A DNA stretch of 64,000 bases, from the NCBI RefSeq assembly GCF_006345805.1, contig NC_042997.1, positions 194,618,001 through 194,682,000 of the forward strand, written 5' to 3'. Positions within the stretch are counted from its first letter, which is position 1, and every line of letters starts with the position of its first letter. Under the pieces are notes generated by a model. The model did no database searches. It was not told the origin of the DNA and was given only the letters and a program-made list of their open reading frames with translations. Below are positions 33,313 through 33,468 of this stretch, piece by piece. The position numbers were made by a program, and so were the translations under genes. Origin of the DNA: Octopus sinensis. Lineage: Eukaryota.

Positions 33313-33468
33313 GAGTTCTCGGCATCGTCTCTCTCTTAAGGGTTGCTGCCTTGTCGTGGCAAGAGAACTTACGTTCGTGATGTGAGCTGCGTCGGGCGGT
33401 GTTCGGTACACCGGGAGGTTCAACCATACCGAATTGGTCGCATCGCATTGGACAAACGAAAGTAACCC
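33313..33468 (+). ncRNA. HDV-like self-cleaving ribozyme at an R2 5' end
   Basis: P1 GAGTTCTC(33313-20)/GAGAACTT(33363-70) opening with G.U; P2 GGGTTGCT(33340-47)/AGTAACCC(33461-68); P3 GCC/GGC with 7-nt L3 TTGTCGT; branched P4; J4/2 CGAA (C33457). P1.1 is non-canonical. Confidence 0.72.

Follow-up and report, generated by a model that had tools for sequence, protein, structure and literature searches.

The 64,000-nt window of Octopus sinensis DNA described here (contig NC_042997.1, positions 194,618,001 to 194,682,000, forward strand) holds at positions 33331-33468 what is very probably the 5' junction of an R2 retrotransposon with a ribozyme of the self-cleaving hepatitis delta virus (HDV)-like type, which would use co-transcribed 28S ribosomal RNA (rRNA) as the 5' strand of its helix P1. 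The element is a further R2 HDV-like ribozyme with 28S as P1 and is nothing categorically new, and the fragment hosting it is probably a dead piece amid decayed ribosomal DNA (rDNA) and R2 debris in an octopus-like genome. Its significance beyond annotation is small. R2 is already on record in molluscs (PMC13188248), and what is added is a cephalopod case among the R2 ribozymes that borrow 28S rRNA for P1, with predicted cut sites at -11 and -9, and a compact core (GCC/ACC, UUGKCGU, GGC/GGU, a 7-nt P1 3' strand and CUUAC), which is common in environmental sequence and which Rfam does not see. An earlier note on this DNA, made from the letters, had already recognized an R2-type HDV-like ribozyme here; that much is borne out by homology to Octopus vulgaris and by covariation, and the letters that it quoted, the complementarity of its helices and the exact 28S stretch were all found in the sequence. 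The placing of P1 and of the cut site, however, had to be revised, as described below.

The comparator in O. vulgaris is an rDNA-derived locus, L002 (OX597831.1, 79.79-79.82 Mb). In this locus an R2 3' end abuts canonical 28S +1 (TAGCCAAATGCC). Also present are the 3' half of 28S as far as L002 2282 (Rfam large subunit (LSU) model), spacer, a stretch of 28S that stops at the R2 site, two full-length tandem R2 copies and two additional R2 5' fragments, so that the junctions of R2 with 28S are seen directly in it; the 5' junction of the copy c2 falls in LSU rRNA according to Rfam. Positions 33340-33468 of the window align with the ribozymes in four O. vulgaris R2 5' untranslated regions (UTRs), the common core of which reads GGACAC(T), ACC, TTG[G/T]CGT, GGT, 7 nt, CTTAC and GTC[C/T] in its first part and ends with GGACAAACTAAA and (A)GTGTCC. 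Outside the ribozyme, the window fragment showed no significant similarity to the O. vulgaris 5' UTRs. P2 of the window differs at most positions from the O. vulgaris GGACAC(T)/(A)GTGTCC with the pairing kept, and in the alignment of the octopus-type sequences (A8) 97.1% of the cells are paired and three pairs are changed on both sides, two in P2 and one in P3, whereas slid controls gave 24-44% paired cells and no pair changed on both sides. The loop L3 is letter for letter that of copies 13.9k and 15.5k of O. vulgaris and of metagenomic relatives, the base helix of P4 is retained in all five octopus-type sequences with C-G/U.G variation (GGAC/GTYC), and GGACAAAC[G/T]AA including C33457 is kept in the same five. 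Folding points in the same direction: when the five sequences were folded singly, P2 and P4 were recovered in each and the P3 hairpin in four (in three with a 7-nt L3), and the pseudoknot-free minimum-energy fold of the window fragment recovers P2, P3 and P4. At the level of sequence, covariation against O. vulgaris thus supports P2 and P3, and conservation supports L3, P4, J4/2 and the putative catalytic C. The 8-bp P2, P3, the 7-nt L3, the branched P4, the CGAA of J4/2 and C33457, all of which the earlier note had pointed out, are by homology to the four O. vulgaris ribozymes the right parts. C33457 would be catalytic judging from its position, which presumably corresponds to C75 of HDV.

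Relatives were also found in metagenomes. Scanning of metagenome contigs with the pattern TTGKCGTGGY-N7-CTTACGT gave 113 stretches, mostly by chance, and nine sequences (L008, L046, L047, L060, L065, L105, L019, L021 and L043) carry all the remaining parts of the ribozyme. All nine have a 7-nt P1 5' partner 10-13 nt upstream of P3, the 5'/3' strands being of the types CCCCGAG/CTCGGGG, CCCCACC/GGTGGGG, CTCCCCC/GGGGGGG and CCGCCTC/GGGGCGG, and the metagenomic ribozymes have a C-G closing pair at the predicted cut. In the gap-free alignment of the window with two of the metagenomic sequences (A9), five of the seven P1 pairs are changed on both sides, and the sole unpaired cell is C33331.A33367. 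The linker CTTAC, although invariant throughout, was part of the search pattern, and its conservation is independent for the octopus copies only. From these comparisons the ribozyme at 33331-33468 is seen to belong to a family. In the two alignments covariation favors P2 and P3 (A8) and a 7-nt P1 directly after P3' (A9).

As regards P1, CTCTCTTAAGG at 33331-33341 is an exact 28S match, and there is no other 28S within 33293-33341. Its CTCTCTT sits 10 nt upstream of P3, a spacing equal to that of the compact relatives, and forms with 33361-33367 six Watson-Crick pairs and a C.A at the closing position (C33331.A33367). The relatives without exception have as their P1 3' strand the 7 nt that separate P3' from CTTAC. 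In the O. vulgaris copies c2 and c3 these nucleotides, AAGAGAG, are fully complementary to 28S CTCTCTT at the R2 junction, and in the copies 13.9k and 15.5k they are TTAAGAG, the exact complement of 28S CTCTTAA, two nt further on. Because the P1 5' strand is 33331-33337, cleavage is predicted between 33330 and 33331, that is, 11 nt upstream of the point of insertion and not 28-29 nt as had been suggested earlier; the latter distance needs a P1 register that the relatives contradict. The 28S identity starts at 33331, the predicted cut, and the spacer homology stops just before it. Likewise, where two R2 copies meet in tandem in O. vulgaris, the second starts at CTCTCTT (L002 8232 and 8253), which is repeated together with the element's first 14 nt. 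The length of a retained 28S leader or of a tandem duplication is reported to equal the cleavage offset, and R2 offsets from -9 to -36 have been described (PMC3774820); this rule holds at both the window junction and the O. vulgaris tandem junction. An rRNA/R2 co-transcript would accordingly be expected to be cut just 5' of C33331 and to leave an R2 RNA with an 11-nt 28S leader, and copies residing in real 28S should read ...GACTCTCTTAAGG. Another candidate P1, within the O. vulgaris 5' UTR (GTGGGCTTT, 9 bp with three G.U), was rejected; it would put the RNA 5' end about 95 nt into the element. A separate observation on the tandem junction is that L002 8232-8290 contains about three copies of CTCTCTTGTGGGGCCTGTTTC. 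The parts of the ribozyme and of the locus around it are collected in Table 1.

Table 1. Positions in the window of the ribozyme parts and of the surrounding R2 and rDNA pieces.
Feature	Positions	Strand	Remarks
R2 copy A, 5' part (zinc fingers, Myb, start of reverse transcriptase; reverse transcriptase core deleted)	27422-29962	+	degenerate, 5'-truncated
R2 lineage B fragment, part of 5' UTR and open reading frame (three zinc fingers, Myb, reverse transcriptase, thumb)	29963-33290	+	from translations and Pfam
rDNA-spacer-derived piece, GT run and then GTCGTCAAAGCGGCGAGTTCTCGGCATCGTC	33291-33330	+	contains 33313-33320, the P1 5' strand of the earlier note
P1 5' strand, CUCUCUU	33331-33337	+	28S-derived; within CTCTCTTAAGG, 33331-33341
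J1/2, AA	between 33331-33337 and 33340	+	
P2 5' strand, GGGTTGCT	33340-33347	+	8 bp with 33461-33468 in minimum-free-energy fold
P3, GCC/GGC around 7-nt L3 TTGTCGT	33348-33360	+	G-C to A-U on both sides compared with O. vulgaris ACC/GGT
P1 3' strand, AAGAGAA	33361-33367	+	directly 3' of P3'; A33367 against G in 13 of 13 relatives
CTTAC linker (P1.1 position and J1/4)	33368-33372	+	invariant in 14 of 14 sequences compared
P4 base helix, GTTC/GGAC	33373-33376 with 33450-33453	+	from folds
P4 continued, then inner hairpins; long, branched	33377-33385 with 33438-33446	+	from folds
J4/2, AAACGAA, with putative catalytic C33457	33454-33460	+	directly before P2 3' strand
P2 3' strand, AGTAACCC	33461-33468	+	folds, and changes on both sides
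Rest of captured R2 5' UTR fragment	33469-33588	+	stops where A-type R2 homology resumes
R2 copy A, 3' part (degenerate CCHC and endonuclease remnants, then 3' UTR)	33589-34278	+	R2 proteins match 33595-33930
Decayed 28S fragment, about +87 to +200 from the R2 site	34444-34555	+	87% identical to O. vulgaris 28S, L002 862-975

The HDV and CPEB3 ribozymes are nested double pseudoknots, in which the P1 3' strand directly follows P3' and about 5 nt lie between P1 and P4; P3 of the genomic HDV ribozyme is a 3-bp GCC/GGC, and L3 of CPEB3 is UUCACGU. In the window all the HDV-like helices occur in order, namely P1, P2, P3, L3, P3', P1', P1.1, P4, J4/2 and P2', and the ribozyme shares with HDV and CPEB3 the double pseudoknot, the 3-bp GCC/GGC P3, a 7-nt L3 of the form UUNNCGU, the position of P1', about 5 nt between P1 and P4, and a C followed by purines before the P2 3' strand. 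Unlike them, it has a P1.1 with one Watson-Crick pair, a long and branched P4, and no Rfam model that recognizes it; in addition, the closing pair at the cut is C-G in its family as compared with G.U (G1.U37) in HDV. In L3, UUGUCGU, the leading U33351 and the conserved G33356 (reverse wobble) are present, the requirement for the L3 G having been described (PMC3774820). P1.1, which was placed by position, would have C33368-G33353 (the latter in L3) as the sole Watson-Crick pair and U.U at the second position, the same in all relatives, and R2 ribozymes with an imperfect P1.1 have been reported (PMC3774820).

R2 HDV-like ribozymes using the upstream 28S rRNA as the P1 5' strand were described by Eickbush, Burke and Eickbush in 2013, with near-junction cutting classes between -13 and -9, to which flour beetle B and Nasonia vitripennis (both at -13) belong (PMC3774820). 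The window ribozyme resembles these in its location at the R2 5' end, in a P1 5' strand that is 28S just upstream of the insertion site, in a leader at aberrant junctions which equals the cleavage offset, in the same order of the fold and in the C of J4/2. It differs from them in the cephalopod host, in the offset of -11 (or -9 in the sister lineage), and in the state of the window copy, a fragment of 258 nt that adjoins spacer DNA and whose closing pair is mutated (A33367).

Several points weigh against this reading. P1 of the window consists of six A/U-rich Watson-Crick pairs and a C.A, with a duplex energy of about -5.8 kcal/mol, while the 8-bp P1 of the earlier note reaches -8.8 kcal/mol; P1.1 has its single Watson-Crick pair; and the HDV-type models of Rfam miss the window sequence (even at E<=10) and all the relatives searched, that is, an O. 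vulgaris copy and six compact metagenomic relatives (at E<=1), absent matches being weak evidence as Rfam models cannot encode pseudoknots. Moreover, the octopus comparison is with one O. vulgaris locus, the four copies of which form two near-identical pairs, the metagenome pattern prescribed CTTACGT, L3 and the two final bases of P3', so that only P1, P2 and the P3 5' strands are independent, and the template-jump origin discussed below is drawn from junction positions only. A rival reading is that there is no ribozyme at all, its supposed helices being fortuitous complementarity within decayed repeat DNA. The missing Rfam matches speak for this, and so do a free energy that is unremarkable against shuffles (z = -0.96) and a descriptor which, with looser helix lengths, gives 0.15 matches per shuffled window; the strict descriptor found the ribozyme at 33331-33468 as its sole HDV-like match in the whole window, but it was drawn up after the candidate had been seen and is biased toward it. 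Relaxed descriptor scans of the 5' regions of the two R2 copies at the locus, A and B, gave no convincing ribozyme. Chance is nevertheless scarcely credible as an explanation, in view of the conservation with compensatory changes against another octopus species, the recurrence of the core in unrelated metagenomic sequences, where P1 and P2 covary fully, and a location exactly at the 28S/R2 junction.

The more specific alternative is that of the earlier note, in which 33302-33330 is a drifted, element-borne copy of the 28S target, P1 is formed by GAGUUCU(C) at 33313-33320 with (G)AGAACUU at 33363-33370, the two strands have co-evolved, and the cut lies 5' of G33313 and is independent of rDNA. 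The complementarity itself is real: GAGTTCTC (33313-33320) and GAGAACTT (33363-33370) make 8 contiguous pairs with one G.U, which falls at the cut site, and this is the most stable P1 option in this copy. A71/C72 could in addition pair with T54/G53 of L3 as P1.1, as read from the sequence. By chance, a random leader would offer a P1 partner of this kind about 1.5% of the time: among 45-nt segments drawn at random from the window, 1.5% contain an 8-bp partner for 33361-33373. The concept also has a precedent in the internalized 28S duplication with co-evolving P1 of the sea squirt R2 B/C, and the 28S duplications with substitutions in horseshoe crab and sow bug follow the same model (Eickbush et al. 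2013, Fig. 8 d-e; PMC3774820). The window is like this model in that a sequence not identical to 28S ahead of an R2 ribozyme can pair with the P1 3' region; unlike it, the upstream sequence is rDNA spacer, it is absent from the four relatives examined, and the pairing overlaps the invariant linker. The match of 33302-33330 to the octopus 28S upstream sequence GTAAACGGCGGGAGTAACTATGA is at chance level (62 of 1000 shuffles score as well or better), and its best local 28S match is at a different 28S position. In contrast, 33293-33329 is identical at 34 of 37 positions, including the GT run, to L002 2692-2728 (blastn-short E=9e-10; 0 of 1000 shuffles), which lies 410-446 nt downstream of the 28S 3' end, and the motif GAGTTCTCGGCATCG is a spacer sub-repeat, present at L002 2604, 2712 and 2826 with no ribozyme adjoining. 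The 28S identity ends at 33331, not at 33313. The leader GAGTTCTC stands in front of none of the four O. vulgaris ribozyme copies, a small sample, and its motif was found there in spacer only.

The other strand tells against the same model. The proposed P1 3' strand would start 2 nt after P3', leaving a 2-nt J3/1, and would use the CTT of the invariant CTTAC, whereas the relatives put the P1 3' strand directly after P3', where it pairs with 28S in the octopus lineages. Relatives lacking the leader already read GAGAGCTT or AAGAGCTT, that is, the complementarity (with wobbles in O. vulgaris) existed before the partner and is not a compensatory change; compared with the 28S-using relatives, the P1 3' strand differs solely by an A in place of G at 33367, the remaining letters of the proposed strand being invariant linker. 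In addition, copy B with three stops and three frameshifts in 2.85 kb indicates that the block has decayed by only a few percent (a rough estimate), so that the strong departure of 33291-33330 from 28S cannot be drift after insertion. For these reasons the model of an internalized and co-evolved target is very unlikely for this locus and finds no support here; if true, it would repeat a published one. The pairing of the spacer motif GAGUUCUC with GAGAACUU is a coincidence. It is likewise very improbable that the captured motif has come to serve as an alternative P1 5' strand in this lineage, although, if it had, the R2 5' end could process itself 29 nt upstream without any 28S sequence, and an R2 ribozyme would have recruited foreign sequence, moved its cut site and escaped rDNA.

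The ribozyme lies in a composite R2 locus. By colinearity, 29963-33588 (3.6 kb) is an insert within the degenerate R2 copy A, since its flanks, 27422-29962 and 33589-34278, run colinearly with individual O. vulgaris R2 copies and also with the Octopus bimaculoides protein P0229. The 5' part of copy A is 72-74% identical to, and colinear with, L002 4080-7154 and 9423-12495, and has zinc-finger and reverse transcriptase (RT) Pfam matches; the 3' part is 80-87% identical to L002 7242-7530, 12580-12873 and 1-434 and is colinear with residues 130-337 of P0229, except that at 33889-33909 about 230 nt of the endonuclease domain, which are kept in the O. vulgaris copies and P0229, have been lost after 33889. 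The same colinearity assigns 33589-34278 to copy A, and the candidate of one internally deleted (SIDE-like) element at 33343-34278 was rejected on this ground. The insert consists, in order, of the lineage B R2, about 40 nt of rDNA spacer, 11 nt of 28S and 247 nt of R2 5' UTR, the last two making up the 258-nt ribozyme-bearing fragment 33331-33588. The open reading frame (ORF) of copy B has about 950 codons, ends just before the CCHC/endonuclease region, is 36% identical to a horseshoe-crab-type R2 over its full length, and is absent from the colinear O. vulgaris copies. A full HMMER search gave the closest relatives in O. vulgaris and next R2 proteins such as that of horseshoe crab, and the identification of the R2 proteins was aided by the alignment in PMC3774820. 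Together with the CCHC and restriction-like endonuclease (RLE) remnants at 33595-33930, the zinc-finger, Myb and RT Pfam matches give the domain set of the three-zinc-finger branch of R2. The decayed 28S fragment at 34444-34555 is 74% identical to a human 28S stretch.

How this block came about is suggested by its junctions. It is probably a chimeric complementary DNA made by the R2 RT through template jumps between the processed 5' ends of nucleolar RNAs, going from an R2 5' fragment to pre-rRNA spacer and then to lineage B R2 RNA. As a natural record it would fit nucleolar template jumping, given a leader that begins exactly with the predicted cut and adjoins pre-rRNA spacer and a further R2. 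It resembles known joins in which sequence derived from a foreign RNA is attached, with orientation preserved, to the processed 5' end of an R2 RNA; unlike those, the proposed event would involve three successive partners. Alternatively, the ribozyme may be the same and the block may have formed at the DNA level, by copying or recombination from a rearranged rDNA locus in which spacer adjoined a short 28S stub and an R2, as filler at a break in copy A. This is possible but rather doubtful. A comparable mosaic in L002, consisting of 28S(+33..+108), 56 nt of spacer-like sequence, 28S(-97..-5) and R2, favors it, as does the loss of about 34 nt from copy A at the insertion point, such as occurs in break repair. 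On the other hand, the 28S stub starts exactly at the predicted RNA cleavage site, which is unexpected for a DNA rearrangement, all pieces are in the same orientation, and the R2 break points cluster, which fits RNA fragments; none of these three points is decisive.

Whichever way the block arose, the window copy is probably catalytically impaired, as judged from the sequence, because A33367 destroys the closing C-G pair present in all relatives. With P1 weakened in this manner and the fragment cut off 247 nt into the 5' UTR, it would be a dead relic.

Some further features of the R2 copies were noticed. The breaks at 29962, 33290 and 33589 are all confined to a single stretch of some 130 nt in the R2 ORF, immediately ahead of the CCHC motif. 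Copy A breaks off near codon 906 and is taken up again near codon 925, and copy B goes no further than codon 950. This clustering may mark a hot spot for RNA breakage or RT dissociation, or may be chance. The whole of copy A is flanked, at 27007-27164 and 34279-34433, by direct repeats of about 160 nt that are 74% identical to each other. Its downstream member occupies the place expected for 28S +1..+86, and recognizable 28S resumes at about +87 (34444). The repeat may be very diverged 28S, an extension of the 3' UTR or a duplicated unit; 34279-34437 and 27007-27164 were tried as diverged 28S (+1..+86), and the alignment was too weak. In L002, 2745-2975 upstream of R2 copy 2 is a 28S/spacer-like/28S mosaic, and at the 5' junction of copy 2 the final four bases of 28S (AAGG) are missing. 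A word-indexed protein search with the stitched copy B ORF matched only a Utopia-like element in L001 (ENA ERZ25070725 contig), where this RT/endonuclease element is present in each unit of a U2 small nuclear RNA tandem array.

Elsewhere in the window, 18845-19296 (+) is a further short piece of R2-like sequence, which covers the zinc-finger and linker region and is closest to the O. vulgaris protein P0002, and an ORF at 26176-26574 (+) resembles, by eye from its translation, a remnant of an IS1595/ISXO2-type DDE transposase. A repeated unit of about 1-1.4 kb, at 34601-35511 and 35988-37337 with 80-83% identity, begins right after the decayed 28S fragment. Furthermore, 47158-47266 (-), which marks the window as eukaryotic, is a full-length U6 spliceosomal RNA gene (Rfam, 100 bits).

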